Source of the DNA: Octopus bimaculoides
Taxonomy: Eukaryota
Length of the DNA: 53,874 nt
Reading direction: 5' to 3'
NCBI RefSeq assembly: GCF_001194135.2
Contig: NC_068982.1
Location: 162,043,656 to 162,097,529, forward strand
Shown: positions 2,491-53,700 of the stretch, piece by piece
Numbering within the stretch: position 1 is the first letter of the stretch
Layout of the letters: each line of letters starts with the position of its first letter
Program-made: the position numbers and the translations under genes
Notes under the pieces: model-generated
What the model was told of the DNA's origin: nothing
The model's database searches: none
Seen by the model: only the letters and a program-made list of their open reading frames with translations

Positions 2491-3515
2491 AGTCTCTTAC
2501 AATAGCACTTCTATACCACTTTTTTTGTCTTCAACAGTGATAGCAATAATAAAATGTATCATTGCTTTATATATTACAACAATGATGGTTTTATTTAACC
2601 TTAAAACTGGGTTAAACTCATTAAAAAAATCATATCTATTCTTCCTTACTCAGTGACTCCTCATAGTGATATTTCTTTGAAACTCTCGCCTTCCTCTTTT
2701 TAGTTGTCACCAACTACAAATATATTCATGTCATATAGGGCATTTTCCTACCCAGTCGTATCCTGATTTGTGCTGACACAGTCATGATACTAAACATCTA
2801 TCTTCTACAACAATGGCCAGCCTCTTACCTCCTCCTTCTATTTGGGATTTTTAAAATTATATATAGAGGAGGGTAGCAGGAGAAGCTGTTACATGGAAAC
2901 CTTTCTTAGAAATATTAGTGATAAATATGAAATGGTTCCAAGTGAGAGCAAACTAAATTAATATAGAACTTACTAACTATACTTTCAGTCTTTCTTCGAT
3001 AAAAGTATTTAAAGAACATTTTCTCATTCTTCTTTACTTCTAAAAATCTTTCCTCTCCAAAATGATGCAACATTCCTAAACTTCATCCTCTTATCATGAC
3101 TCAGCATTTATGATATGTAAGGTGTGGCACCACCAATCTAAATTGGTAGCACCACACTTCACTTCTATATCTTAATGAAGGGATACTTGACTAAATATTC
3201 AGATTTGAATAGTTAAATTTGTTTACGCATTAAGTTGTTGATTTATTTTTAACAAACACAGACACACACACACATACAACTGACACACACAGCATATACA
3301 CTCATACAACACAACGCAAACTTGCACACGCTTATACTGTTATACTTTTTTTTATCTCATCTCTTAATGGTATTTAAGCTATGAAGAAGTTATAAGTATT
3401 GAATAAAACTGAATAATAGGCATGTTGTGTTGTTTATGTCAGTATTTACATGTTTTGATTCATGTAAGAATGTGTGTGTGACAATCAAATATATGTTAAA
3501 TTTATTTTATTGCAG

Positions 3516-3593
3516 GACGGGCTCGATGTAATGGTGAATGTGCCAAAGAAAGCTAATGATGCCATGCATTTAAGCATGCTAGAAGGTTTAGAG
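3516..3593 (+). CDS. TRIO: Trio/Kalirin RhoGEF exon: end of DH1 and DH-PH junction (DGLDVMVNVPKKANDAMHLSMLEGLE)
   Basis: Acceptor tttattttattgcag| and donor GAG|gtaagt; 78 nt, phase 0-0. Translation closely matches the remembered human Trio segment DGLEVMLSVPKRANDAMHLSMLEGF. Confidence 0.96.
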
Positions 3594-5112
3594 GTAAGTT
3601 AACCAACAGGTCTTGCATTTTTCCTGCATCTCCTGATGTCTCTGCTTCCAGCAACAATAAAATTCTATATTCACATTGATTTGATGGAAAAATAACATTT
3701 GCAAGCTCTGTCAGAGCTATACAAACAGCAACAACAATGTCACAATTCTGACAGCTGACTGAACAACAACGATAACTTATAGGCTCTAAAGTCATTAACA
3801 ACAACAACAGTGTTAATGCGCTGTTAAGTTGGACTTTTGATATCAAATATAACAGTGGCCATCCACATTCTGAGAGTTTTGCTTGTGGTCATGAATGACC
3901 AAGGGAACAGGGTGCTGAGCTACCAGCCAAGACATCACTGGTTCTTGTCATAGCACCAACACTGTGATTGTATCATGCCTTCATGGCCAAGGGGTAAAGT
4001 ACTCGAACTACTGACTGAAAAATCAGTGGTTCATATCCTCTCAGTGGCACTGGTTGAGTTCCTGGGCAAAAATACTTATCTTAAATGGCTTAGTCAATTT
4101 AGTTGTAAATAGATACCACAGAGTAGGAACAACTATTTGCTGTTAGTTTACAGTGTCATAAAACATGAAATATTGGTACTTTCTGAGTGTTAGTAACTTC
4201 TAATATCCATCAATTTCTGTGGTGAATGATGGTCACTTTCACATTGATATGCCTAAGATACACAACATAAAATTTCAGTCAACAGGGCTATCATGTCGAG
4301 AGACTTATTAGTTTTTCTCTTTATCTATGATTTCTTATTCATACACAAGCTGACATATTTGGTTTAGAGGGATGTGTGATGCTTGTGCCTTTCTCTAAGA
4401 TATTAGTGATGGAATTGATGCAAATTTGCTTTGGTTGAGAATTGAAATCAGTTTCATTGTTCAGCAGAAACTGATTTCTTCTCTGCATCATTTTATTGCT
4501 TTCTGTATTATAACTGATTTTCAAAGAACAAAGAAACACTTTAAATATCTCTGATACCTCATTGTTTGTTACTAGCAAGCAATATTCATTAGAGAGGAGG
4601 AGTGTAACCCTATGTCTTCAGGAAATAAACAAGCAGCTATGAATTTTTTTAATTGTTGTTATCAAGGAAGCTAGTTTACATTCAGGAATCAAAACTGGTC
4701 CATGACATCAGTTTTCCAACCTATCACTGTATTGCTGACAACAGATATCAAATATTCTGGCTAGAAATATTCTTATTACTTTCATTGTGTGTGTGTGTGT
4801 GTGCGTGCGTGTTACAATATCACGGGATTGACCAGACTCTGGGATGTTGTTATACATCCCTGGTCACAATGCACTTTGCATTGTTTTAGCCTTCAAATGA
4901 TGCCACCCCACTGGCTATGTGAGCAATGAAACAGAAGACTCTAATCCAACTAAGTCAGTGCGCAATGACGTTAATTTATCAAAAATGCTTACATATATAT
5001 AACTCAGCCTTGATTTTTGGTTTGTTTGATTTTGTCAAAATGTTATTTTTAGTGTAAAATATTTCATGTGTTAAATTGTGTTCTTTACATTTTTCTTGAT
5101 ATTTCTTTGTAG

Positions 5113-5295
5113 GATAATTTAGAAGCTTTAGGTGAAGTACTTTTACAAGATAACTTTACAGTCTGGGAACCAAAGAACTTGATAAAGAAAGGAAGAGAGA
5201 GACGTATCTTCTTATTTGAGATGTGTCTCGTGTTTGCTAAAGAAATTAAAGACAGTAATGGAAAATCAAAATATATGTATAAAACCAAGTTACTT
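5113..5295 (+). CDS. TRIO: Trio exon: PH1 N-terminal half (DNLEALGEVLLQDNFTVWEPKNLIKKGRERRIFLFEMCLVFAKEIKDSNGKSKYMYKTKLL)
   Basis: Acceptor atttctttgtag| and donor CTT|gtaagt; 183 nt, phase 0-0. Matches Trio PH1 (LQESFQVWDPKTLIRKGRERHLFLFEMSLVFSKEVKDSSGRSKYLYKSKL). Confidence 0.97.
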
Positions 5296-7695
5296 GTAAG
5301 TATATTTCTGTTATTTTGATTTCTAACAATAGAGTTTCAATAAAAAAAAAAGTATTCTTGATAGAAGATTATTTCAATTTATATTTCCTTGTTGACAGAA
5401 ATTATATTTAATTTTCTTTTACCTCATTTAACAATGTTTTCTCATTTAGCTTGCAAGATCACAAACTTTTGGCTGTGATGAAAATGAGAGTGTGTGATAT
5501 TAGTGCATTTCTCAAAAACTTTAAGCGAAGTATTACATTCTTGTATGTGGTTTGCAAGAATCTCGATGTAAACTTGTGTGTTGAAACAGATCTTGTTGTA
5601 TATTGCCAATAATAAACACACACATACTGGTTCTGTCTCATTTCTTTATTATTCATTAATTGGTTAACTATTCAACCAATTAACTAATCAATTGTAGGAT
5701 TAATCATTCAGTTAACCAATCAATCAGTTATTGTTGTAAAGTCATTTTGTTGCCATTAGCGACATTCTTAAGCTGATCTGAAGTAGAGAGAGTATGTTAT
5801 TGAAGAGGTTGTGAATGGAACAAAAGGACTTTCTTCATCATCCTTATCATTTAATGTCCTCATTCCATCATAGATTGAGTGATTAACTGGTTAATTAGTT
5901 GGTTAAGTAGTCAACAATTATTAATCACTGATGGTAGTGAATTTGTAAATAAAGAAGTTTGTGATATTTATTTGGGCTCTTTATGTTCCGGTTTCAAATC
6001 TTGTCATGGTCAACTTCACCTTTTATGCATCTGGAGTTGATAAAGTAAAGTACCAATCAATTTAATCAACTAACCTCTCCTTCAAAATTTTAAGCCTTGT
6101 ACTTATAGGTACAAGAAGTAATTGTTAGTCATTAAAAGATTTTGTTGGAATTTCTCTTTTTCTTCAGCAATAACACAGAAATCAGATGTTTCTTTGCATC
6201 TGGTCATGGACCTGATATTATCAGTAAAGTTATTTATAGTATCATCTTTAAGGAACTTCTACTGATCAAAAATGTGACGCTTATAATTATTATCTCTATA
6301 TATACACACCAACACAGCAGGAAAATCTCAAGCTTCTGTTATTAAAATATATTTCTAGTATTTTCATTATCCCTTTATATGATAATGTATTTTGTGCTAG
6401 GATTTCATAGCAGTGAATACAAGAAACAAAAATGATGTATGAGATAATAGAGAAGAATCTTAAGAGTTACACTGTGAATGTGATGTTTTTTATCAGCCTT
6501 CCCTTCTGAAACCCTACTGAAAAGAATGTATGGAAAGCTTCTTTAGCTTTTATTTCTAGTTGGTTGTCATTTAACTCCAAATCAGTCCTGGTTGAGTAGA
6601 CTTATGGTCGTAAGCATTCCCCCTGTGACCATTTAGGAATATGTAGGACAACTTTATTTAATGTATCTTTTCCTTATTTAAGATGTTGAGTTCTGTAAGG
6701 TGATGGAGATTTGTCTACCATTTCTAGCATATTGAGCAACCGTACATTCTCCCTCCTTAGCTCCAATGTCATTGTTTTTCTTGTAGCAATGAGAAAGGGG
6801 AAAAGATATTTCAAGGAAAAAACTACTTGACCTAGATTAAACTGATTTGATTAAAGAGAGCAACCTGGACATTTGTCAGTTAGCTGGATGAAGAAAGAAG
6901 CAGCTGTAATATATACCTTTATGTAAAACAATGTTACCTCCTACTGATGGCTCTAAGAACCATTTTCTACTTCAGTCTTGTCTGATCTTACAAATAGTTT
7001 TTAAAGCAAGCAATCAACATTCTTGAAAATTGACTCCTTTTCTTCCTCCCATTTAGATACTGAAAGAAAATACATTTACATTTTTGAACATTATTTTCCA
7101 GTTTATGTAAAATATTCAGTATTACACAAGCCAGTTAATGGATAGAGTCATTTAGGCATCAACTAAAATACCTTGAGATATTTGTTCCAGCTTTCTGCAC
7201 TCAAATTACACCATGATCAGTTTTACCTTTCCTCCCTTTAGGGTTAATAAATATCACAGTTTAACTTTCTAGGCACCCCCTAAGACATGTTCTAGTTATA
7301 TACAAATCATAAACCAATCACGCACACTCATGTGTGGACACTCATGTGTGGACACTCATTAAATTGTTTCTACCCATTTTAATTTAGTTTTTGTCACAGA
7401 TTCCAACCTACAGGAGATCACCACTAGTCCTCTAATACCTACCTACTCCAAATTGTCCATTTTTAAAGTGTTTGCATTTAAATTACTATCCATTACCACC
7501 CCTTTATATAAGAGCCCAAAGTTAGTTCTATTCTAAACAATAGACTGATATTATACCAATAAAAGTTACTTTATACAAACCTTCACCAAATTCTTGATTA
7601 TTTCTAATTAATTTAACCATATAGGTTGTGCTGTTTTTGTTGTTAGAAATGTGGTTACTAATGGTTTAAATTCACTTTACTTTGTGTTTTTATAG

Positions 7696-7797
7696 ATTTC
7701 AGAAATCAACATCACTGAACATATAGAAGGTGATGAATGCAAGTTTGCACTTTGGACAGGAAGAGCACCAATTTCTGATTACAGAATAATTTTGAAG
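7696..7797 (+). CDS. TRIO: Trio exon: PH1 middle (ISEINITEHIEGDECKFALWTGRAPISDYRIILK)
   Basis: Acceptor tgtttttatag| and donor AAG|gtatga; 102 nt, phase 0-0. Matches Trio TEHVEGDPCKFALWVGRTPTSDNKIVLK. Confidence 0.97.
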
Positions 7798-8164
7798 GTA
7801 TGAACATTTAGCAGACTAACTCTTAGTATTTAGTAATGTTGCCAATTTTATATTGTCATTTGTAGACATGGTGATAATTGTAAGAAAATAAAAGGTTTAA
7901 CTCCTGTAACTTGTGCAGTCAGTTTTCTTATTTTGTAGACACAACTTCCTTCTAGGAGTCAGATATGTTGAAAAATTAAAATAACCTGATAAGTTGAGAA
8001 AATTGGATGTAATAGCTTATAGACTGGTGTGTTGACAAACTAAGGTATAGTTTGATATGTTGACACAATCAGTTATAATAATTTATATACTGACATGTTG
8101 ACAAAAGAAGATATTTACCTTCAATTGTGAAGTATCTTTAAATAATAAATAAATTGATATTTAA

Positions 8165-8977
8165 GAAATGAAGTTAGTATGATCTGCTGGATGTGTAATG
8201 TCAGTGTGCATACACGACAGTGTGTAAGCGCCCTGAGAGAAAAGTTGGGCATAAGAAGCATCAAATGTGGTGTGCAAGAGAGGCAACTGCACTAATATGG
8301 TCATGGGATGAGGTGATGAAGCATGACCTTCAAACATTGGCCCTCAGAGGCAGTGACAGGAGACCGAAACCTTTGGAGATATGCTGTGATTGAGAAGATC
8401 CAGCAACTAAAGTGAGATCGCAGCCATGCATGTCCAGCCCTGTTAAGAATACCCCTTATGCATCAGGTGATATGATATGCTTGAGAAGACCTGTTGAGTC
8501 AAGTAAAACCAATAGCGTACCTATGGCCAGTACCCCCTGACTGGCTTCTGTGCCAGTGGCACATAAAAAGCACCATCTGAACATGGTCGATGCCAGGCTC
8601 ACCTGACTGGCTCCCGTACCAGTAGTATGTAAAAAGCATCAACCAAATGTGGCTGATGCCAGTACCTCCCGACTGGCTCTTGTGCTGGTGGCATGTAAAA
8701 AGCACCATCTGAACATGGTCGATGCCAGGCTCACCTGACTGGCTCCCGTACCAGTAGTATGTAAAAAGCATCAACCAAACATGGCTGATGCCAGTACCTC
8801 CCGACTGGCTCTTGTGCCGGTGGCACATAAAAATGGTTGGCGTTAGGAAGCATCCAGCTGTAGAAACATTGCCAGATCAGATTGGAGCCTGGTGCAACCG
8901 CTGGCTCTCCGGACCTCAGTCAAACCATTCAGCCTATTCCAGCATGGAAAATGGACATTAAATGAGGATGATGATGA
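8165..8977 (+). mobile_element. RTE LINE 3' end with tandem-repeat 3' UTR and (GAT)n tail
   Basis: Peptide RNEVSMICWMCNVSVHTRQCVSALREKLGIRSIKCGVQERQL...YGH matches the RTE ORF2 C-terminus. It is followed by ~66-bp repeats, the conserved tail and gatgatgat. Confidence 0.88.
8505..8832 (+). repeat. Tandem array of about five ~66-bp monomers with a 132-bp higher-order period
   Basis: agcaccatctgaacatggtcgatgccaggctc starts at both 8569 and 8701. The spurious ORF 8499-8828 shows a 44-aa repeat. Confidence 0.9.
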
Positions 8978-9228
8978 ATTCCCATATAAATGCTTGAAGC
9001 TGGTTACATGTATTTTTATATATGTGTGTCTGTGTGTGCACACACGTGCATTTGTTTATGCTTGTACATGTTTGTGTTTTTATGTGCATGTAACTATGTA
9101 TGTGTGTGTGTCTTTGTGCATATGTACATGTATGTGGGAAAGAATCTGGTGATGTCAAGATTGTGTTACTTATGAAACTGTTAAATGAAAATTCTCTCAA
9201 GCTCTATCTCTGTTCCTTGGTTATATAG

Positions 9229-9374
9229 GCATCATCACTGGATACAAAACAACAGTGGGTGAAAAAGATGAGAGAGTTAATTCAAGAACGTCTTGTCTAT
9301 ATGCACTCTGCCTTGAAAGAACCTCTAACAAAATCTGTCGCAGCACCAAAGATGTTTGTTAACAGAACAAGTCG
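9229..9374 (+). CDS. TRIO: Trio exon: PH1 C-terminal helix (ASSLDTKQQWVKKMRELIQERLVYMHSALKEPLTKSVAAPKMFVNRTSR)
   Basis: Acceptor ttggttatatag| and donor CG|gtaagt; 146 nt, phase 0-2. Matches Trio ASSIENKQDWIKHIREVIQERTIHLKGALKEP. Confidence 0.96.
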
Positions 9375-10770: not shown

Positions 10771-10900
10771 GGATATGGAAAGTGACACAACATCTCTAGA
10801 TGAAGTCCATATTGAACGTCGCGCTAGTCTGGTGTCAGTGAACTCCAACACCACCACTGCCACAACAGACAGTAGCAGTAGCAGTGGCAGCAGCAACAGA
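10771..10900 (+). CDS. TRIO: Trio exon: Ser/Thr-rich PH1-SH3 linker (RDMESDTTSLDEVHIERRASLVSVNSNTTTATTDSSSSSGSSNR)
   Basis: Acceptor tactatttgtcag| and donor AGA|gtaaga; 130 nt. Phase 2-0 bridges the previous exon (CG+G = Arg) and the phase-0 SH3 exon. Position and composition fit the Trio linker, though sequence similarity is weak. Confidence 0.88.
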
Positions 10901-19489: not shown

Positions 19490-19825
19490 CTGCCAGTCAC
19501 CTAGTCACCTACCGTTCTGGCAGACATATTAGCCAAATTGACTACATCCTTGCCAGAAAAAGGGAAAGACGGCTGCTTANNNNNNNNNNATATTAGCCAA
19601 ATTGACTACATCCTTGCCAGAAAAAGGGAAAGACGGCTGCTTATAAATGCCAAAACCTTCCCAGGTGAAGAATGTACCCTACAACATAGACTGGTAGCTA
19701 GCAACTTCAGGATCAGGGCTAAATGGATGCCCAGAAGACGACCAGCATGGAGGAGAAGGATCTGGAAGCTTAAAGATCCTGCGAATGGACAGAGATTTAG
19801 AGACGTATTACTTGAAGCAATTCGT
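19490..19825 (+). mobile_element. RTE LINE fragment, C-terminal part of the AP endonuclease domain
   Basis: Reads FRKPASHLVTYRSGRHISQIDYILARKRERRLLINAKTFPGEECTLQHRLVASNFRIR. The SQIDYIL and QHRLV motifs are typical of APE domains. Confidence 0.9.
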
Positions 19826-22800
19826 GCAATCTGATCCCAGTCTTTAGACTTAGAGGTCTGACCACAGTGGATCAGCAAACTAAAGATGGCTGCAGTGACC
19901 TGCAAGCTGAAGGTTTTTACATTTAAGCAGCCTTTTTATAGGTGAGTTCCCTTACAGGGCTGGGGAGCTCCACATACCCTGGAGTTGTTGGAAGTGTGTC
20001 AAAGTGGATACTGAACTGCCCAAGGAACTCCATGGTTGACTCCCGCTAGCCTTTTCCTTACACAAGGCAATAAGTAGAGGGATACAGAGGAGGATTAAAG
20101 GTAGGGAGTGAACCTGCAATACAACAGTGAGACAGTGAACAACCACCTTCGTTTGCTTTGCTAGCTCAAAGAAAAATCATTAGGAAACTTAGTTGAAAAT
20201 CAATATTGAGCTAATAAAACATTATTACTGGAAAGTTTTGTTGATGTTTTATTTACTGTAAAATACTTATTTCCAAAATTACTGGTCTGACAAAAAGTCA
20301 ATATTTTATACACGACAGGTTTTGTTATAGGACTGGATTACTCCAGTTGTCATACAGCATAATTGAACATATTTCTTATCTGTTCTTTATTACTTAATCA
20401 TTAGGATGGTAATCCTCCCTTACATCCAACTCAAATAAATTGCCATTTTTGGCAAACTCTATCTTATTTCCAATATTAGACAACAATTATTCTGTCTAAC
20501 ATTAAACATTGCCTTGTTTTTTCCCAATATTCTGTAATGTTATTGTTATATTTTAGATGACATGGCCTATATTTCCTCTTATTTCTGGTCCAGTGATTAC
20601 AGACTAGATTTCTAGAGTTATCTACTTGAGATATATACTGAGTCAATGATAGGTTTCTTATTAAAAGCTTCTATCTGAACAAAACTAGAAAGTGACCAGT
20701 CATTTTTACTGGCCTTTAATCTGCTATCACTGTTAGTTTGATTGCATTTCAAGACAAATTTGTACTTGTGATACCTTCTAACATTTGCTGATTGTCTATA
20801 TTGTTGATTATTGAACATTGTCAGTCATTCTTAAGTTGTGTATCAGTATAGAAGTAGCATCGTTTGTTAGCTGTTTCAGGGTCAACTGTATCCTTGTGAC
20901 ACCTTAGAGTATAATTTCTATTCAGTTTCTAGAAGAGAAATAACTAAAGTTTATACCTATTTCACCTAATCCACCTATATATTATTAACCTCCCCATTTC
21001 TCTTACCTCTAAGTGTGTGTATGCACACACATACACATATATTTTCCTCTACAATAAGAAAATGAGATAGATCTTAAGAACGGATGATCGGAGGAAGTGG
21101 GATTGTGGCTGACAGTATAGAAGGATAATATGTGATGTTAAGAGAGAGCATAGGTGATGAAATAGTTGAGGTAAGAGAGTGATGGTTGTCAATAAAGTAT
21201 TGATCTGAGGGATGGGGAGTAATGGCTAGCAGTACAGGAGGATAAATGGAGGGATGTACACCATATTATAACAAGACTACATTAGAAGATTAATGGTCTC
21301 TAAAAGATCGATATACTTTTTACCAGAGTGGAAGTACTAATTGCAATAGTGGAAGGTGCTGTTGATGGTAATGAATATAGGGGATCAGTTGGTAGAATAA
21401 AGAATATGTGTTGTAATTGGCATGGAAGAATCATCAAGGATTGTTTTTGTTATTTTTTAAGATACTGCACTTCTCTGAACAATAAACATTGAGTGGCTTC
21501 ACTTTTGAATCCCTCGATAAAATGGAGCAAAAGGGTAATTTTAACCTATCCCTCATTAATTTATCATCAGGCAATTTGTTCTCCTCCCATGTGATATGTG
21601 TGTCTCTACCGCCATACCTCCATCAGTCTCATAGCAATTAAAAATTTTACAGAAATGATCTCACTTCACAAAATTTGGTATGATAGTTTTCTGCAATAAC
21701 CTTGTCTGAGTTGGCAGCTTCACTATTGCTCAAAACACTGATTACCCAGAATACCCAACCCCTATTTTTAAAAGGTTTTGACCAAACACTTGCAAGTTTT
21801 AAATTCTACTGGTTTTGTATCACACTCAGCACTGCTACTACAAGCATCTCTCTCAAGTGCTTATGAAGAGATTTAGATTTTTACAAATGCTTCACTCACT
21901 GAATCACCAGCTAATTGTTTCTTTTTGAATAAAAGATTTTTCCTTAGACTGTGAACATGTAGTTTTTATACACACAGACAATATCCAACACCCATAACTC
22001 TGTTATATTAACTTCATTATTTAAAGCACTATTTAATCGATCAATCTTAATACCTTTCATACTTTTACTACAGATTAAAAGAGAGCTAATCTAACCAAGT
22101 GGCTTTCAGAGTTATGACCCCTGGGCTACACCTTTTTCCTTCGTTATCATATACTCAGTGTGATCTCATTTTTTTCACCTTGTTCAGAGTTCATTGAGTA
22201 GCTACTTTTGTTTTCAGTTAGATGTGAAAATATTTGAAGTTAAGTTTCTAGAAGTTCTAGGCCCACAGTTAGAACCTAAATTACATCTACACATTATATG
22301 GCTGTGTTATACTCACTACAAAATAAATATATAATAGTGTTATTATCATATGTCTTGTCTTAATTCTGCCATATAGCTGATAGGCCTTCTATGTTTTGTT
22401 TATTACATGTTTATTTTTCTGTTACTTTTCATTCTTTTTGGTTTTATATATTTTCCCATCTCCTCATAACTCATACTTTTATAGTTTGTCAAGAGAACCC
22501 CATCCTTTTTTTTACATTCCTCACTCTGTCTTTCATGTTCACTCATTTATACCCCAGCAGCTTTTTGCTGTCAACCAAATTTGCTGTCATCAAATTGAAC
22601 AATATTATTAATAAGGTGTCAAATTTGTGATGATTCTTGGTTGATAACTGTTGAAAGATGCATGTCTATGTGTTTTGCTTGCCTTTTTCCTTGTTTTCCA
22701 TACATTCCTTCTTCCTCCTTCTGTGCCAGGCTACATTTACTATCAAATGTACACACACACACACACACACAAATATATGCATACATCATCATCATCATTG

Positions 22801-24914: not shown

Positions 24915-26940
24915 ATTGTTTATAAATATGCTATGGTTTGCCATGATGAAAATATACATTTTTTTATTTGTCAAACTTCCTTTGTGTCAATGAATATTGA
25001 AGTTAGAATTTCTTGATAAAATATTACAGTATTGCACATGTCAAGCTGATTTGTTTTGGGTTAAATGGAAAAATTATTGATTTTCTTCCGCTGCTTCTAA
25101 GCTTTGAATGGACACAGTGGGAATTTATCTGTGTATTGTTGTTCATTTGTTGCTACTCTTTCCCCACAACAGTACTCCTTGCACCTGTTATTTATCTCCT
25201 TTCAATGTCTCCCCTACTGTGAGAGACATTTACTCTTATCTGTGATTATCTTCATTCTGTGAATTGATAAGGGTGCCTCCATACAGTCACTTGGTCCACT
25301 AGAAACAGCAGCCATATCTACCTCAAATCATAACCTTCTATCTTTTAAAAGGGACACATTGTATAATGATATTGTCTTAGATATCCTATGTCAGAGAACT
25401 AAAACAGTGTTTTCCTGGTCGGAAAACCTTTGGTCACTGTTTTGCTCACTAAACAGCTACGATAACAGCATTATGCTTCTTCTATGTTCTCCACTGTTAC
25501 CCCCTCTCTCATTCTCTCACTCACTGGTTCTAAGATATTCAGTCTAGCAGTGAAGATTCAGCACCACTGTTGTTCTCAGGTGTCTGTAGGAGTCTTCAGC
25601 CATCAATGTAATCTACTTGGCACCGGTACATGGAAAAGGAAATACACACCTCCTAGGTAGCTGCTTTATTTATTTTTACTTTCCTTACACGTATTGCAAT
25701 GCTTGTGTATGTATGTATGTATATATATNNNNNNNNNNNNNNNNNNNNNNNNNNNNNNNNNNNNNNNNNNNNNNNNNNNNNNNNNNNNNNNNNNNNNNNN
25801 NNNNNNNNNNNNNNNNNNNNNNNNNNNNNNNNNNNNNNNNNNNNNNNNNNNNNNNNNNNNNNNNNNNNNNNNNNNNNNNNNNNNNNNNNNNNNNNNNNNN
25901 NNNNNNNGAGTATGTATGGGATTTTTATTTTTTATAGATTTATTTTAAATTTTTGTGTATGTGTGTAGCATATGAGTATATATTGTGTGTATGTGTCAGT
26001 AAAAATATGTGTGTTTGTACGCGTGATAAGATGCCCCCAGTCTTCACTGTAAGATATATACACAGTGCCAAAGTTTGCCAGTATTATGTTCTGTGTGCAT
26101 GAGGCTGACCTGACAATCCATCAAACTCATGCCAGCATGAAAGAATGGACATAGTATCATGATGATGATGTGTGTGTGTATATCTATGTCAGTCTGTCTT
26201 ATATATATATGATATGATATGTTTAATATAGCCGTATGTATATATTGTATGTTGTGAGTTACATCACCACTCCTCTCAACTTCAATCTGTTTATCAGCAA
26301 CTCAGTGCTGTTGTGATTTTCTGAATCTAAATATTTATGGTGTCTGTTTGCTAAATGTCTGTTCTGGGACATTATTCTGCCTGCTGTAGTTACAAACAAG
26401 GTTTTACTGTACATTTATTTAGATGGCAGCTTGCAGAATATTAACACAAGTTTCAAAAAACAAACTAAAAGTGATTATTTAAACAAATTCATCTGCTTGT
26501 GTGTTATACACATGTACACATGAGTTTATATGTATATGTATATATATAAATATATGTGTGTGTGTGTATACATATAGACACACACACACACACATAAATA
26601 TGTATTTGTTAATTTGTATATTCATACACTTTCAGATACAAGGTGATTATGCTATCAAATATTTTTGTTATGAACATGTGTCTATATTTATTTTGCTTTG
26701 TATCGTTAATAGTTGTAATTACTTATCAATAATTTTTACCATTAAAAAACGCTTTTGTTGTTGCTATATGTTAAATGACATGATGATGATTTACTGTGAG
26801 GTTCAATATTTTGGCATTTCACATATAAACAATAAATGATAATAATCCAACATGGTACACACTCTCAGTAATTCTACTGTAAATCTTACCAGTTCCTTTT
26901 ACTGTGTTGTTATATCTCTCTCTCTCTCTCTCTCTCTGTC

Positions 26941-27121: not shown

Positions 27122-27540
27122 AAGTGGCTATATAGTAAGAAGCTTGCTTCCCAACCATGTGGCCCAGGGTTCAGTTCTACTGCATGACACCTTGGGCAAG
27201 TGTCTTCGAGCCAACCAAAGCCTTGTGAGTTGNNNNNNNNNNTGGTAGACAGAAACTGAAAGAAGCCCATTATATGTATGTGTGTGTGTGTGTGTGTATA
27301 TATATAGATACACACACGTGTGTGTGTCTTTGTGTCGGTGTTTGTCCCCCTGCTACCAATTGACAATGGTGCTAGTGTGTTTACGTCCCCATAACATAGC
27401 AGTTCAGCGAAAGGGACTGATAGAATAAGTATCAGGCTTTTAAAAAGATAAGTACTGGAGTCAATACATTCAACTAAAAAATTCTTCAAAGTGGTGCCCC
27501 AGCATGGCCACAGTCAAATGGCTGGAACAAGTAAAAAGAT
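27122..27540 (+). mobile_element. tRNA-derived SINE, near full length
   Basis: Degenerate A/B boxes (gtggctatatagtaag; gggttcagttct), core caccttgggcaagtgtcttc...ccaaagccttgtgagt, internal (GT)n, and 3' part ...gccccagcatggccacag...gaacaagtaaaaga. Related copies lie at about 17765-17930, 18310-18545, 24211-24390, 34912-35140, 41480-41680(-) and 44600-44700. Confidence 0.8.
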
Positions 27541-36656: not shown

Positions 36657-37128
36657 NNNNNNNNNNNNNNNNNNNNNNNNNNNNNNNNNNNNNNNNNNNN
36701 NNNNNNNNNNNNNNNNNNNNNNNNNNNNNNNNNNNNNNNNNNNNNNNNNNNNNNNNNNNNNNNNNNNNNNNNNNNNNNNNNNNNNNNNNNNNNNNNNNNN
36801 NNNNNNNNNNNNNNNNNNNNNNNNNNNNNNNNNNNNNNNNNNNNNNNNNNNNNNNNNNNNNNNNNNNNNNNNNNNNNNNNNNNNNNNNNNNNNNNNNNNN
36901 NNNNNNNNNNNNNNNNNNNNNNNNNNNNNNNNNNNNNNNNNNNNNNNNNNNNNNNNNNNNNNNNNNNNNNNNNNNNNNNNNNNNNNNNNNNNNNNNNNNN
37001 NNNNNNNNNNNNNNNNNNNNNNNNNNNNNNNNNNNNNNNNNNNNNNNNNNNNNNNNNNNNNNNNNNNNNNNNNNNNNNNNNNNNNNNNNNNNNNNNNNNN
37101 NNNNNNNNNNNNNNNNNNNNNNNNNNNN
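36616..37128. other. (TA)n run leading into a 472-N assembly gap (36657-37128)
   Basis: Seen directly. Other gaps: 19580-19589 (10 N), 25729-25907 (179 N) and 27233-27242 (10 N). Confidence 1.
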
Positions 37129-37645
37129 GCCACATTTGTAATATGTCTTTTCTTCTACATTTTTTCGTGCAGCTGAAGATTGCTCTTCATATTGCATTTA
37201 AGGTAATGCTCACATTACTTAAATAAATTGAAGTAGCATGAAATGTGCGTACTGCAATCACTTTTGAAATCCGTGTTGCTTATTATTTGATATATATATA
37301 TATAGATTTAGATATACAACTATAGATGTACACACACACATATGCATACATACACGTGTATATTTGTGTGTATATGTACATATGTGCATGAATGCACACA
37401 CACATGCAAACTCAAAACTCACTCCTATTCTTTTACCAGTTTCAATCATTGATTAGCAACCATACTGACACATTGTCTTCAAGAATTTTGTCAGTCAGAT
37501 CAACCCAGTACTGTTCCTTTTTGACAAGTCACTATGTTATGGGACATAAAATAGCACAATATTGACAACACCAGTTCTAGATTACTTACACACAGACGTG
37601 TGTGCATGTGTGCACACACACATATATTCACATATATAGACCCAC

Positions 37646-37687
<42 letters not shown>

Positions 37688-37803
37688 CAAACGTGTGTGT
37701 GTATGTATATATGTATGTGTGAATACACATTCACACATCATACATATTATCATTGCTTTTACATCTGTTTTTTTGCTTGCTGACATGATGATAGTGTGTG
37801 TGT

Positions 37804-37838
<35 letters not shown>

Positions 37839-38236: not shown

Positions 38237-38271
38237 TATAAATAGACATTATACAACCAGCAGACCATTCT
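38237..38271 (+). promoter_or_regulatory. Putative core promoter: TATA box plus initiator
   Basis: TATAAATA at 38237-38244 and CCATTCT (YYANWYY) with its A at 38267, exactly 30 nt downstream of the first T. A CAGCTG E-box lies just upstream. About 550 nt upstream of the candidate first-exon ATG. Confidence 0.5.
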
Positions 38272-38817
38272 TCACTCAGACATTGAAACTATCAGCTTGC
38301 TTTGCTAATTTCCCTCTTCTCATCATACTAAGAAAATTTTCTAAACACTGCTGCCTTAGTGTCAGGAGTTGTCATCGCTGTTGTAATAGTTCAATTCTAA
38401 TGTATACGTGGTATAAGTTTTTTTATTCAGTCTCTGTCTGACATTTTTACTTCGTCTTACTGTTCACTCCAGTGAATGTGCTTGTCCCATTATAGATCTG
38501 TATTTAACACATTCATATCGATTATATTTTATTGACTTTGTCAAATATTTGCTTCTGCCTGTGTTGATAGTAACAGACTGATTGATTTGTGATGCTCCTT
38601 GTGGTCAGCTGCTAAATTAAAAAGAAAACTTTCTCCAGAAAATGGACTTAAAAAGAAAAGAGAGAGAGATCTCTACAGATGCAGCTATGAGTGGGATGAC
38701 ATTTTTCTCTTCTTGAATTATCACTTGGCAAACAACTTTGTGTTGGACTACACTGGAATCTATTCTCGGATATTTAATTGATTTCACAAAAAGAGGATGA
38801 CTGTCTAATATTTGGGA

Positions 38818-38904
38818 ATGTTGCTTTTTCGATTATTACATTGGAAACAAAAAGTGCGAGACAAAAGAGCTGAGAGCTATGATGGCACCGATAGCAATGT
38901 CTTG
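38818..38904 (+). CDS. TRIO: Putative coding part of an alternative first exon of Trio (MLLFRLLHWKQKVRDKRAESYDGTDSNVL)
   Basis: ATG has a purine at -3 and an in-frame TAA lies at 38806-38808. The 29 codons end at a strong donor TTG|gtatgt in phase 0, the phase of the SH3 exon acceptor. No AG lies between the stop and the ATG, so it cannot be an in-frame cassette exon. Prediction only. Confidence 0.6.
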
Positions 38905-40561
38905 GTATGTTATTTTATGGATTTCATTAATGAAATGTTTGCATTGATACTAAAGGATTTAAATCTAAGGATTTAAATATGAAATTTACTTTAATCTAGG
39001 GAAAACATATTTATAATTTAGGTTTGCATAACTCTTTAAAAACTTTTGAAAGTTTGATATTTTCATTATTGTTCTTGTAGTTACAGAAAACTGTCAAACT
39101 AAATGCTTAGATATTTACCATCATATTCTGATTTCAACAGAGACTTGGGTTTAATTTGCCCAGAGTTAGCTTTACCCACTCCACAAATGTGTGGGGTTTG
39201 ATTCATATTAGAAATTATTATCACCACCACCATCATTATTGTCTGAAATAGGATATAGTTGTATAGTGTTAATTTCTCTGTGTCGAAAGTGGAAGTTTTT
39301 TTTCTGTTCTGTTTTTTCCTAAAACACAGTTCCATATCATTTACAGTCTTACGGTTTCATTGCTTTAAAGAAAGTTATTATTTTAAGCTGTGACAACTTT
39401 ACTTTTATTTCCTCCCAAGTTGTTAATAAAATAAGTAGAAGTGAAGTATTGATATTCATCAAAATCAGTAAAAAATTATTGCTTTCTCCCTACATTGAAA
39501 CAATATTAGCATCTGGCATCTAAAATGTTATCAGGTACTCACACTCCATCACAGTTAGGCAATGCGACCAGTGTAACTTACATGTCAGTTTTCTATAAAG
39601 GTGGGAAAGAGCTATGTTTGTGGGAAAACTCTTAGCATCAACAAGAACCAACTAGCTGGTCTGTTCCAGAGGCTTTTCAATTCCACTGCTGAAAGATCTC
39701 TAGAAGGGCTTTGAACTAGGAACTTTAGATATCTTCCAGAAATCCCTAACCTGAAACTGCAGTAGATGGGCAGCATTGCAAGTTTGAGATAGCTCTATAG
39801 GCACATAAGTGCCACCCGCTGGGACCGTCTCAGATGTGTGCTACATGATGAAACTATTTTGCTTGTGCTCATTCAGTGACATAGCATTGCTAATTTGCAG
39901 TGTTAGGTCACACAGCAGTTGTTTTTAGGACAAACTCTTACTGCTTTCCATTAACCAAGAACAAGCAGTCTACCTTTGTCTGGTGGCTATGGGGAAAACT
40001 TTTATGTCATGGACATTATTGAAAGGACTGAGGATAAACATTTTCCTCATCAGCTAAACTTTTATCAACATTGGCTTCTAATCCTTCTTGAAGAGGCAGG
40101 TACTATTTTCCTTAAATTTGTTGAAAGGTGAGTGAGGGTAGTGAGCATAGCTCTAGTGAATGGGGCTGTTAGATTCAGGAGAACAGCTCGGAGAGGGCAC
40201 ACACTTTGGTAGCCTAGAGAATCCTGAATCAGTGGAGTTCTTTGATCAAGGCCTTTGTGACAGTCGTGCTCATGGGACTGCCTCATGTATGTGTATATTG
40301 TATATACTGTTCATTTGTTTGGAGTTTTGTTCCCCCCTCCTCCATTTCATTCATTTTCTATTTAAACCCTCTTGTGTGTCCCTGTAATGCTTACTGGTCT
40401 GCCATCTTTGTGACAAAAATAAAGAGATTTCTTATCATCATCATTAACGCTAATTCTATTCTACAGAAATATGATAATTATTTCTGCATTACCTTATCTC
40501 TTTTTGAAGAAAATTCAATATAAAAAGAAAACATAGTTTATTTTTCTTTATCATTCTATTG

Positions 40562-45176: not shown

Positions 45177-47100
45177 GCAGAAGATGCAAATAGTTACAAT
45201 GGCAAAACATACATAAGGAACAAATAGTATAGACTGCATCTTGTGTTTATTATAATTTTTCCTATATTTGCTCTGTATATCATAACCAGCAATACCACTA
45301 AGTACAATAATAACCACACCATTTAACTGGAAGTAGACTGGATAATGATACTCTATGTGGATTTCTTTTGTGGACCATTGTTAACCCTTTTTACTAGATA
45401 TAACTGTAACCTGATAATGCCTCTTATGTTATTTTAATAGTGTATTAATCCTTCCTGCTTTCTAAACTCTTTGACAAAACTTTCTTCCTTAGAAATGCAG
45501 TGTCCTTCTCCTGCCCATTTTAACACCTTCCTATTCAGTACTTCTTTTACAGAAATTTCAAGTTAAGCTTCAAGTGAACTGATATTGCCACTATAGAAGA
45601 GTCCTATCGTTACTGTCCAGCATGACCCACACTCTTCCTTTAATCTGAAATTGTTATATAACACATTTAACTAACTGCTACTGAGTAATAAATACTTCGT
45701 TATTTATCCTCAACCTCTTGTTTTTTATCAGTCTTGGCCCAGTTTGGCCTCTATATAGAAACTTCACTCAATTTATATTACTGAAGCATAATTCATATTA
45801 CGCTTCACTCATTTTATATTACTAATGTTTGTAAGATACGTATATCACAGGCCCAAATCTCATGTTAGTGTGGGACACAGCAACCCTACCTTTTTATATT
45901 TGGGATTGACAGACTCAACAGAGCACTGAACAGAATGACTTGCAATATGTTTTTAGATTTCTTTGTATTCTGGATATAAACTGGGGCCATGTTGACCTTA
46001 CATTCTTCAAGAGTCAAGTACCAATACTAGTTAATTGCTGTGGTTGATATAATTACCTATATTCAACCCTGTAACTTATGTTAATGTTAGAATATATTAT
46101 TTTGTTACATTTCATACAATTTGACATAAATCTATTCATATTATTACAGTGGGTAGAATAGAGACATAGAAAGAATTATGTAGTAGATGTTTAAGCCACA
46201 AGTTAACTTCAATTGAAGACCTATTAATCAAAGGCATTCTGGCCATGATTATCCTGTCTTTCTAGACGTATATGTTGGTCTATATTATTCATATGCTGTT
46301 TTCTTTCCCATGATTGTAAGGTATTATTTGTAGATTTGTATTGTGCATAGCATCGCAAGCAGCATAGCAGCTCTCTGATTGGCTTGTACTACAGGATATA
46401 GAAACTACTGGAGTTGTGTCTAGTCAAGAGTTAATATTTTCTCATGACCCACTTACTTGAACCATATATTATTTTCTCAGTCAGTTTGGTTTTCTTTGTT
46501 CTTTCTTTTTGCTGCTTAAACCATGAGTTCTTCTCCCAGCCAATGTGGCTTACTTCTCTTCTTATAACAGGCAGCAATTATTTCAATTAGATTTTCTGTA
46601 AAGACTAAAGCAACAATGAAACAGAACATTTTTCTTCTTTGTAGAAAGATCTCCACACAAATTGGCTCATTTGGGTGTGTGTGGGTTTCTTTTATTGTCA
46701 ATCATTGGATTGTGGCCAAGCTGGAGTGGTGCCATTAGGGAATATTTTGTTGATTATATCACAGCCCAGTACTTTGGTAGTTATTTTATCAATCTTGAAA
46801 AGAAAGAAAAAAGAGGCAACTTGACCTTGGCATAAAGTAACTAGAAAAGAACTAATTTTACTAAGTCATTACAAACAGTTATACTTATGTATATATTATA
46901 CCATAGATATATTAATACTACAAAACACTTGTAACTAATATTTCCTCTAGATTTTTGCTTTAGCTATGTGCAGAAATTTACTTTTTTCCAAATTTCATTT
47001 TCATTTGTAAAATGTGTACATCCATAACATCTCCAAGAAGAATTACTCTCTGACCTTGCTAACTATTGCCCTATTGCACTTATTTCTAATACATCTAAGG

Positions 47101-47622
47101 CAAGGGTCACCAAACTATGGTCCATGAGGTCAGTTCATCCGGCCCGCCACCATACTGTACCTTTTGTGTAAGTACCTGCAATGAGAGTTCATTTGCCTCT
47201 GGTATGGCATCAGTGTTTGGAACAACTTATGTCTGTGAGCAAACATTTTCAAAATTGAAATATGTGAAGTCAGCACATCGAACAAAGTTGACTGATGAAC
47301 ATTTGAAAGCAATTCTCTTGATTGGATGCAGAATTTCTAAAGCAAATATTAATGATATCTTAAGCGCTAAACACCAGTTTCACAAATCTCACTAACTTTT
47401 TTTGCTGCCTAGTTTGTGAGATTCGGATATGTGCACACTGGATGTGATATGACTATCTTATTGCTAACATCGCCTTCTTTGATAACTATTTGGTAAGTAA
47501 ATATGTTGGTTGTCTATATTTGTTGTTTATTGACTGTATTGTACTGAACAAAATGGTTATGCAGCCTGCGTCCGTCATTCTCTCAGTTATCTGGCCCGCT
47601 GTGAAAGTTTGGTGACCCCCTG
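47101..47622 (+). mobile_element. Non-autonomous hAT (Buster/SPIN-like) element retaining the transposase C-terminal dimerization region
   Basis: TIRs caagggtcaccaaact / agtttggtgaccccctg. Perfect 8-bp TSD ATCTAAGG at 47093-47100 and 47623-47630 (nnnTAnnn). The ORF at 47117-47395 contains VFGTTYVCEQTFSKLKYVKSAHRTKLTDEHLKAIL. Confidence 0.92.
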
Positions 47623-52385: not shown

Positions 52386-52391
52386 TTGCAG

Positions 52392-52647
52392 TGTTCTTCA
52401 GATGTTACAGTTGTCATTGTTGACTATTCAGCTACATCTACATGGGACCTGAGTGTTCAGAAGGGTCAACAAGTAGAACTAATAGATGTTTGCCCTCCTG
52501 GACAGCCGGATTGGTGCCTTGTGCGTACATTACCTACTGAGGTGAAAGAGCCTTGTCAAGGTCTTGTTCCAATGTCTGCACTTAAACCGGTTCCAATTTT
52601 GAAAGTATCATCTGCTGCAGGGACGCGCACAAGTGCTGACTTAGATG
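52392..52647 (+). CDS. TRIO: Trio exon: first SH3 domain (CSSDVTVVIVDYSATSTWDLSVQKGQQVELIDVCPPGQPDWCLVRTLPTEVKEPCQGLVPMSALKPVPILKVSSAAGTRTSADLDG)
   Basis: Acceptor (ttta)n-ttgcag| and donor GATG|gtaagt; 256 nt, phase 0-1. SH3 motifs (DY..., PDWCLVR, GLVP) match Trio SH3-1 (TVVIHDF...ELTIRRGQTVEVL...PDWCLVRT...EGLVP). Confidence 0.95.
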
Positions 52648-52710
52648 GTAAGTTACTTTTGCTGGTTTTCTTTCTTTCCAACTAAATGTGTGTGCGTGTG
52701 TGCATGCATA

Positions 52711-52746
<36 letters not shown>

Positions 52747-52873
52747 GTAAAATGTCATTAACAGATACACAAACAATTCTTGTGGCATTAAAATTACAAA
52801 TGAAGATTTCATCCATAATTTGAAACATTTTCTCACCAGAGTTCTATGTTTAAGACATGAGGAATTATGTATA

Positions 52874-53700
52874 TTATTTACATTTGACGGATATTTGTCC
52901 TCGTCTTGTTATGAAGAAAAGAGAGGATGAAACCAATAAACTGTCCACAGTCTGTCTACCCTATGTGAAAGGCCTCTCCAAAAAGATACAAAAGATATGC
53001 GGCCCATATGACATCAGGACAGTATTCAAGAGTAATACAACACTTTGCAGATATCTCCTTCGAGTAAAACCACCAATAGAAGAGAATATGACCAAAGACT
53101 GCATGTACTCCATCTCATGCAGCTGTGGTAGGTTATACAAAGGTGAAACATGTCACCCCCTCAAAATAAGAGTAGACGAACATCGCAAAGCTGTGACATG
53201 AGGAGATATTGATAAATCGGGTATAGCTGATCATGTGTGGAAAAATGGAGACCACCTCCCCCTGTGAGATGAAGTTAAAATAATAGGCAGAGAACACCAC
53301 TGGAAAATATGAAAACTAAAAGAAGCAGCACATATGCTAGGACACAACAACCTCCTAAGCAGCCCAGTGCAGATATGAGTAGCATATGGGAACCGGTATT
53401 AAGGAAGGATAGGAAAATATTCGATTTATAAGCCCTAAAATTCACTCCATAATTGCCTGTGGGCATTTGGCATAGTGGTTAAGAGCGTGGGCTACTAATC
53501 CCAAGATTCCAAGTTTGATTCCAGGCAGTGACCTGAATAATAATAATGAAAACAACAACATCAAAAAATACCTTAGGAATGAGAACCCAGGTTCAAAATT
53601 TCAGCCAAAACATTGTGTTAACAACAAACAAGTTGAGGACAGATATCCGTCAAATGTAAATAATGAATTTTCTCACCATCTACTGATGGGACTTAATCAT
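52874..53700 (+). mobile_element. Penelope-like element 3' fragment: GIY-YIG endonuclease with inverted terminal segments
   Basis: VCLPYVKGLSKKIQKIC...DCMYSISCSCGRLYKGETCHPLKIRVDEHRKAV*GDIDKSGIADHVW shows the PLE GIY-YIG with a CxC...H...H pattern and in-frame stops. 52874-52910 is inverted relative to 53627-53663. Confidence 0.9.

Follow-up and report, generated by a model that had tools for sequence, protein, structure and literature searches.

Positions 38818-38904 of the window, together with the 21 nucleotides that begin at an ATG at 38797, correspond in Octopus bimaculoides to an alternative first coding exon that Trio/Kalirin genes of other invertebrates have conserved, and would probably give rise to an isoform that starts with the SH3 domain and lacks the first guanine nucleotide exchange factor module (GEF1). 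The window is the whole stretch of DNA that was analysed, 53,874 nucleotides of the forward strand (assembly GCF_001194135.2, contig NC_068982.1, positions 162,043,656 to 162,097,529), and all octopus coordinates refer to it. An earlier note, made from the letters alone, had predicted such a GEF1-less isoform and had placed an internal promoter in front of it. The isoform is backed by a conserved exon downstream of GEF1 and by gene models that join this exon to SH3, but a promoter of its own at the proposed position is not.

The features on which the argument rests are the following (a slash marks the splice site):

10771-10900, plus strand, constitutive Ser/Thr-rich linker exon, ending in phase 0 at AGA/GTAAGA and forming the 5' border of the host intron
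10901-52391, plus strand, host intron, 41.5 kb, phase 0, downstream of all GEF1 exons
38797-38808, plus strand, retained ancestral start: ATG 38797, ACT GTC, then TAA 38806-38808 at codon 4
38818-38904, plus strand, candidate first coding exon, 29 codons, MLLFRLLHWKQKVRDKRAESYDGTDSNVL; its first Met is equivalent to ancestral codon 8, within the conserved Met cluster
38905-38910, plus strand, phase-0 donor TTG/GTATGT, 1.4 bits (real donors of the gene, 0.3-5.7 bits)
52392-52647, plus strand, SH3-1 exon, with acceptor AG at 52390-52391, a phase-0 start and donor GT at 52648; proposed splice partner

The candidate exon has the orientation of the gene and sits in the intron directly 5' of SH3-1, 13.5 kb upstream of 52392. 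Its elements are present as they had been described, with ATG 38818, an in-frame TAA (38806-38808) 12 nucleotides upstream, 29 codons that run to 38904, and the donor GTATGT from 38905. The phase-0 donor at 38904/38905 fits the acceptor at 52391/52392, and since the linker exon ends in phase 0, a phase-0 donor at 38904 would join the SH3 exon in frame; the splice geometry had thus been read correctly. The constitutive junction 10900/52392 connects GCAGCAACAGA to TGTTCTTCAGATG, the candidate junction 38904/52392 GATAGCAATGTCTTG to TGTTCTTCAGATG. In the core of the encoded peptide, MLLFRLLHWKQKVRDKR, a hydrophobic run is followed by K/R, L, x, H/Q/R, the invariant W, K/R and a basic cluster. The candidate region is non-repetitive, as had been noted for the ~570 nucleotides ahead of the ATG, with neither a tandem repeat nor a competing long open reading frame (ORF), and an Rfam scan found no RNA family match in it.

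Orthologous exons in other taxa

An exhaustive HMMER scan with the hypothetical spliced product returned mostly genomic ORFs of SH3 exons, plus two spliced gene models, both from sacoglossan gastropods, that reach the first residues of the query. These are GFO00014.1 ("kalirin-like isoform x8") from Plakobranchus ocellatus and KAK3803493.1 from Elysia crispata, in both of which the exon is spliced to SH3 and whose N-termini (…GMMMVKLVQWKSRNKR…) resemble the MLLFRLLHWKQKVRDKR of the window. Like the window, the two gastropod models have an ATG-initiated peptide (…MMVKLVQWK/RSRNKR…) and a phase-0 donor to SH3-1; unlike the window, they keep an N-extension of 8-10 residues (MSG..FHNFG), and the tail after KR differs. 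The earlier note had not recognised this N-terminus, whereas the peptide family was already present in these public models.

In the genomes of Plakobranchus (locus L001) and Elysia (L002), the peptide is encoded by a separate ATG-initiated exon that ends with TCG/GTGAGT in phase 0. The two exons are ~85% identical with mostly synonymous changes, while identity in the flanks drops to alignment noise, which marks them as a coding exon under purifying selection. Three further loci from assemblies of the ENA encode related peptides: L007 (MTVAFQNFGHMVVGVIRWMSMGRKLE, donor GAG/GTACAT, phase 0), L008 (MAFQFIGMMMVKLTHWKHSKHKRW) and L009 (MAFQTLSLMMVRLAHWRHHKSKKK, donor AAG/GTAGAA, phase 0). The exon precedes SH3 on the same strand by 12 kb in L001, 5.7 kb in L002, 9.1 kb in L007, 5.6 kb in L008 and 9.8 kb in L009, and encodes 24-34 residues in these taxa. 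The shared peptide (…MMMVKLxxWK…KR) consists of an N-extension M-x-x-F-Q/H-x-F/I-G, followed by MMMVKLxxW with the invariant Trp and a basic cluster. The N-extension (AFQ.., FHNF) is kept at the protein level, with synonymous third-position differences.

In L001, L002, L007 and L009 the exon opens with the ATG, in-frame stops lie a short way upstream, and donor and acceptor are both in phase 0. Altogether the exon is ATG-initiated in all five other taxa, and in four of them, the exception being L008, its donor shares phase 0 with the SH3 acceptor and is compatible with it.

The SH3 exons give a measure of the distances involved. L008 and L009 stand as far from heterobranch gastropods in SH3 identity as the window does, and since their SH3 exons are as divergent as that of the window, the upstream exon has been kept across comparable divergence. 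L007 has an SH3 loop insertion in common with the caenogastropod Batillaria. Among Logan contigs of at most 1.2 kb, a 55-residue ORF (P0198, CPAGQPEWCLVRTLPNEVGESSQGLVPMSTLKPVPILKV…) is 82% identical to the SH3 exon of the window and is the sole close relative in any of the collections searched, everything else being at 60% or below; it presumably belongs to a second cephalopod, and its contigs do not extend as far as the upstream exon.

Two side observations concern the L008 locus. A segment of ~55 nucleotides is tandemly duplicated just upstream of the exon (L008 2700-2880, …GATTTAGCG[TC]GAGAAT[T]ATA[CG]AACAT…). A weaker exon-like ORF, SKFVLRLVMVKLTFGKLSKHERMG, with a summed score of 129, follows ~350 nucleotides downstream of the exon (L008 3295-3366), which suggests that the exon may have been duplicated locally in this species.

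The same loci bear on whether the element is a first exon at all. It might instead be an internal cassette exon of full-length Trio, included between the linker exon and SH3-1, as both neighbouring junctions are in phase 0 and the exon length is a multiple of three, so that inclusion would keep the frame. Plakobranchus has a CAG three nucleotides before the ATG, the Elysia frame is open far upstream, and the Elysia model does treat the exon as internal. The upstream "exon" of that model is, however, made of tandem repeat and looks spurious, and Plakobranchus has an in-frame TGA five codons upstream. L009 carries a TAA two codons ahead of the ATG with no AG in between. In the window no AG lies between the stop at 38806-38808 and ATG 38818 either, and the peptide is thus unreachable from an upstream acceptor. 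The initiator Met is moreover conserved in all five other taxa but the sequence preceding it is not. We therefore regard a cassette exon as very improbable. The first "exon" of KAK3803493.1 (MKQIMLNQKHHVP… repeated) lies within a tandem array of ~100-nucleotide units (L002 9845-10655) and is probably an annotation artefact fused to the real N-terminal exon.

Raw motifs and homology of the octopus ORF

Taken alone, the sequence elements in the window are at chance level. TATAAATA at 38237-38244 and the initiator-like CCATTCT at 38265-38271, with its A at 38267 and thus 30 nucleotides after the T of the TATA box, are present as reported, but a loose TATA-plus-initiator pattern occurs 18 times on the plus strand of this AT-rich window, and TATAAATA itself nine times on the plus and seven times on the minus strand. 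The proposed promoter is accordingly unsupported. It is also not conserved, as none of the five orthologous loci has a canonical TATA box within 150 nucleotides upstream of the start codon, and TATA-like variants are scattered at inconsistent places, -65 in L007 and -8 in L009. The leader of 551 nucleotides that it implies contains eight upstream ATGs (uATGs), one of them in good context. The donor, which had been called strong, is average for this gene at 1.4 bits; 170 of 3429 GT sites on the plus strand score at least as high as TTG/GTATGT with a generic donor matrix, and 24 ATG-initiated ORFs of at least 20 codons on that strand finish at an equal or better donor in phase 0. The promoter and splice motifs read from the raw sequence here thus do not rise above chance, and the comparative data alone set this ORF apart from ~20 look-alikes.

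With each feature so common in the window, the ORF could in principle be a chance product of an AT-rich intron that happens to combine an ATG, a phase-0 GT and an upstream TATA-like motif. Pairwise scores of the candidate against single taxa are reached by 0-2 of 1356 null peptides and by 15-32 of 20,000 shuffles (~0.1% level). Summed over the five taxa, the pairwise score is 158 and exceeds those of all 19,012 null peptides (maximum 146), drawn from ~0.33 Mb of six-frame sequence, and of 4,491 ATG-initiated nulls (maximum 144). The candidate ranks first among 738 eligible ATG-initiated peptides of the intron that end at a phase-0 GT, and first among 2849 six-frame ORFs (8 bits) with a profile built from four other taxa, the window excluded. 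With an earlier three-taxon profile hidden Markov model (HMM) it had ranked 22nd (2.6 bits), and the signal became clear after L008 and L009 had been added.

The most stringent comparison allowed no alignment freedom and scored the 17-mers that start at the 13,687 ATGs of the window and of ten loci. ATG 38797 (MTV, stop, YLGMLLFRLLHWK) obtained a score of 84 compared with 43 for the best unrelated peptide; in its gapless match to L008 and L009 it thus scores roughly double the best of 13,684 other ATG-anchored peptides. Aligned gaplessly from this ATG, the window, L008 and L009 all have the invariant Trp as their codon 16:

Window, 17 codons from ATG 38797: M T V (stop) Y L G M L L F R L L H W K
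L008, aligned from ATG: M A F Q F I G M M M V K L T H W K
L009, aligned from ATG: M A F Q T L S L M M V R L A H W R

The octopus ORF also agrees with the orthologues in its strand, its host intron and how far it lies from SH3. A chance origin is effectively refuted by the summed-score and anchored tests and is in our view scarcely conceivable, and on these comparisons we regard the homology of the octopus ORF with the conserved exon as settled.

An interrupted ancestral frame

The frame upstream of ATG 38818 reads ATG ACT GTC TAA TAT TTG GGA. By the alignment, ATG 38797 is the ancestral start and ATG 38818 the conserved Met at codon 8, and the TAA at 38806 removes the short N-extension that other taxa conserve. 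This stop had been taken as marking the start of the ORF just below it, whereas it interrupts a longer ancestral frame whose ATG remains. An uninterrupted frame from the initiator ATG to a Trp at codon 16-19 is consequently not found in the window, where the frame is open from Met codon 8 (38818) onward.

Several observations weigh against the main reading, a conserved exon that is still in use. Codon 4 is TAA in the window where L007, L008 and L009 have CAG (Gln). With A at -3, the context of the uATG at 38797 is good, and the three-codon upstream ORF (uORF) that it opens stops nine nucleotides short of ATG 38818; in a transcript that includes the uATG, initiation at 38818 would suffer from this. 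Profile-HMM scores of the candidate are small (7-8 bits), with noise in other loci at 8-9 bits. None of the large protein collections searched carries the peptide of the window; the two alignment searches gave fragments of the SH3 exon only and missed both gastropod models too, and an exact look-up found no contig on record that encodes the read-through ORF. The gastropod models GFO00014.1 and KAK3803493.1 are automated, fragmentary annotations that end in doubtful sequence. In L008 the best donor (AAAAG/GTGGGT) is one nucleotide out of phase with the SH3 acceptor and the sole phase-0 GT (TGG/GTTACA) is very weak; the mismatch is likely an indel error, given a contig coverage of 2.19x and a junction on an A homopolymer (L008 2935-2950). 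Finally, the 10 kb that precede SH3 in Biomphalaria, Candidula, L006, L010, L011-13 and L014 did not yield the exon, which is uninformative inasmuch as these introns may extend beyond the flank covered.

Two further searches were negative. When the hypothetical spliced product was used as query in a word-indexed protein search, there were zero matches, the SH3 exon included, and a metagenome scan with the degenerate back-translation of MLLFRLLHWKQK, in collections that hold no cephalopod sequence, gave none, the SH3-exon positive control also finding no relative. The exon and its peptide were not found described in the searchable literature.

Some of these observations would also fit a recently disabled relic, i.e. 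an orthologous exon inactivated by the nonsense change at codon 4, the intact remainder reflecting how recent the loss was. Besides the stop itself, the ancestral ATG still present in good context suggests that the stop is young, the lost N-extension is conserved at the protein level elsewhere, and the peptide of the window is without match in protein and contig searches. Against this stands what follows the stop: four codons past it an in-frame Met lies exactly at the conserved Met cluster, and from there on the frame stays open for 29 codons, with the basic cluster preserved and a phase-0 donor that could be used. It is also unlikely a priori to catch a long-conserved exon in the brief interval after its inactivation. 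The TAA could moreover stem from a single C-to-T change from CAA, from a polymorphism or from a base error in this draft assembly with its four N gaps. An exon kept over such divergence is rarely caught just after its death, and since everything after the stop is intact, continued use is favoured; we consider continued use of the exon probable and a recently disabled relic unlikely.

If the exon is in use, translation would begin at the conserved Met at 38818, via leaky scanning or reinitiation. Alternatively, transcription might start between 38798 and 38817. A non-coding exon farther upstream is conceivable too. A speculative candidate element for such a start is

38771-38777, plus strand, TATA-like TATTTAA, 47 nucleotides before ATG 38818

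from which a start site ~30 nucleotides downstream would lie past the uATG at 38797.

The predicted isoform and its N-terminal peptide

In this species the exon would be transcribed from an internal promoter of its own and spliced to 52392. The product would start just before SH3-1, lack Sec14, the spectrin repeats and GEF1, and carry the second exchange factor, GEF2.

The N-terminus had been described as hydrophobic then basic and as a potential amphipathic membrane anchor. Its linear layout is conserved, but the anchor is not supported. Across the six taxa, the largest helical hydrophobic moment of any 11-residue window ranges from 0.35 to 0.56, a value that 30-91% of shuffles reach; as it does not rise above composition-matched shuffles in any of the taxa, amphipathicity is not evident. 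AlphaFold predicts, with low confidence, a helix at residues 2-19 (predicted local distance difference test ~63, with three of 12 alignment rows covering the N-terminus), a disordered linker and a confident SH3 fold. A reasonable guess is that the hydrophobic-then-basic peptide serves as a tethered N-terminal targeting element, possibly a membrane-binding one.

Host gene and other features of the window

The host is a Trio/Kalirin gene on the plus strand, with its exons in the order DH1 end, PH1a to PH1c, linker and SH3. The exon at ~5113-5295 matches the GEF1 PH domain of the human TRIO DH/PH structure 1NTY (E=3.5e-24), and PH1 is assigned to SOS1_NGEF_PH in Pfam (E=1e-15). The exon at 52392-52647 is SH3_2 in Pfam and matches Kalirin 1U3O (E=7e-11) and TRIO 7SJ4 (E=5.8e-8). 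The GEF1 exons (span 3510-9374) were mapped with a segment of human TRIO as query, which served as a lead only:

~3510-3593, plus strand, DH1 end, GEF1 exon upstream of the candidate
~5113-5295, plus strand, PH1a, GEF1 exon upstream of the candidate
~7693-7797, plus strand, PH1b, GEF1 exon upstream of the candidate
~9226-9374, plus strand, PH1c, GEF1 exon upstream of the candidate

The window extends 1.2 kb past the SH3 exon, and the GEF2 side lies beyond it. In Candidula, the gene model next after SH3 carries a PF00621 RhoGEF domain, as expected for Trio.

Runs of N at 19580-19589 (10), 25729-25907 (179), 27233-27242 (10) and 36657-37128 (472) mark the window as part of a gapped draft assembly. 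The last run ends 1.1 kb upstream of the proposed TATA box, which bears on the trust that can be placed in single bases such as the TAA at 38806.

Further features of the window are repeat-derived or resemble mobile elements. A 98-residue ORF on the plus strand (47099-47392, …FGTTYVCEQTFSKLKYVKSAHRTKLTDEHLKAILL…) has a near-threshold Pfam match to the C-terminal dimerisation region of hAT transposases (E=7e-4; 19.8 bits, the cut-off being 21.4) and is probably the relic of a hAT transposon within the Trio intron. Three other ORFs look retroelement-like by eye and have no significant Pfam match (2063-2485 on the minus strand, 19505-19831 and 52854-53198 on the plus strand); our impressions are reverse-transcriptase-like (…FEIVPGRGTIDAIFLVRQL), long interspersed nuclear element (LINE)-like and GIY-YIG/Penelope-like (…YSISCSCGRLYKGETCHPLKIRVDEHRKAV). 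Positions 37287-37825 consist of dense (AC)n, (GT)n and TA-rich microsatellites with sub-threshold Rfam matches to mir-3149, mir-1277, mir-297 and mir-466. All of these are far below gathering scores and are repeat artefacts, not microRNA genes.

Comparison with known GEF1-less isoforms

GEF1-less isoforms of Trio/Kalirin are of a kind already known, and the exon with its peptide is present in two automated gastropod models. The precedent of internal promoters, to which the earlier note had appealed, is documented for Kalrn Duet (PMC3541206) and UNC-73 (PMC3280986) and is matched by RefSeq isoforms of flies with SH3 and GEF2. The Kalrn Duet promoter is located in an intron downstream of GEF1 (PMC3541206), and a Trio Duet isoform has been seen in rat brain (PMC5132261). 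Like the proposed product, the mammalian Duet isoforms are without Sec14, spectrin repeats and GEF1, with GEF2 kept in Duet. Unlike it, Duet includes the kinase region and has been shown experimentally, whereas the octopus isoform is predicted from sequence. The Duet start lies after SH3-1 and has a Cys-rich N-terminus. This N-terminus is apparently unrelated in sequence to the peptide of the window.

The GEF2-only isoforms UNC-73 C/D/E/F of C. elegans provide a second likeness to the proposed product. For unc-73, at least eight isoforms are described, some with RhoGEF2 only, that act in G-alpha-q signalling (bioRxiv 10.1101/2021.05.08.443256; PMC3280986), and RhoGEF2-only isoforms are reported to rescue RhoGEF2-specific mutants (PMC3280986, citing Steven et al. 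2005) and to act downstream of G-alpha-q. In Drosophila, the RefSeq "kalirin isoform X2" (XP_065720468, 799 residues, and relatives) combines a unique N-terminus with SH3 and DH2-PH2 and has no GEF1, as predicted here; its N-terminus (177 residues) gave no match to the profile of the conserved peptide. The shortest isoforms of the fly trio locus are called "rho guanine nucleotide exchange factor 25" in RefSeq. p63RhoGEF (ARHGEF25)/GEFT is a stand-alone, G-alpha-q-responsive Trio-GEF2-like DH-PH protein whose short N-terminus gives membrane association. We take it as a functional analogy only, since it is a separate vertebrate gene without SH3 and is anchored by palmitoylated cysteines, whereas the peptide of the window has no cysteine.

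A broader reading, to which we give equal weight for and against, is that an ancient, hitherto undescribed N-terminal targeting peptide defines a dedicated SH3+GEF2 isoform of Trio in lineages that range from cephalopods through heterobranch and caenogastropod-like snails to at least two further invertebrate groups. In Lophotrochozoa this isoform would take the place of UNC-73E and Duet as an effector from G-alpha-q to Rho, its start shifted in the octopus to an internal Met after the nonsense change at codon 4.

Trio/Kalirin genes encode two Rho-family exchange factors, and animals separate them via internal promoters; the GEF2-only products of worms and mammals have distinct functions in G-alpha-q signalling, neurotransmitter release and muscle. 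If the exon is in use as proposed, genome annotations that fragment Trio or overlook this isoform would have to be corrected. The exon would offer a handle for isoform-specific knock-down and reporters in cephalopod and gastropod neurobiology, along with a peptide whose localisation is directly testable. The split between the two exchange factors would then be maintained in molluscs and their relatives by a specific N-terminal peptide under long-term selection.

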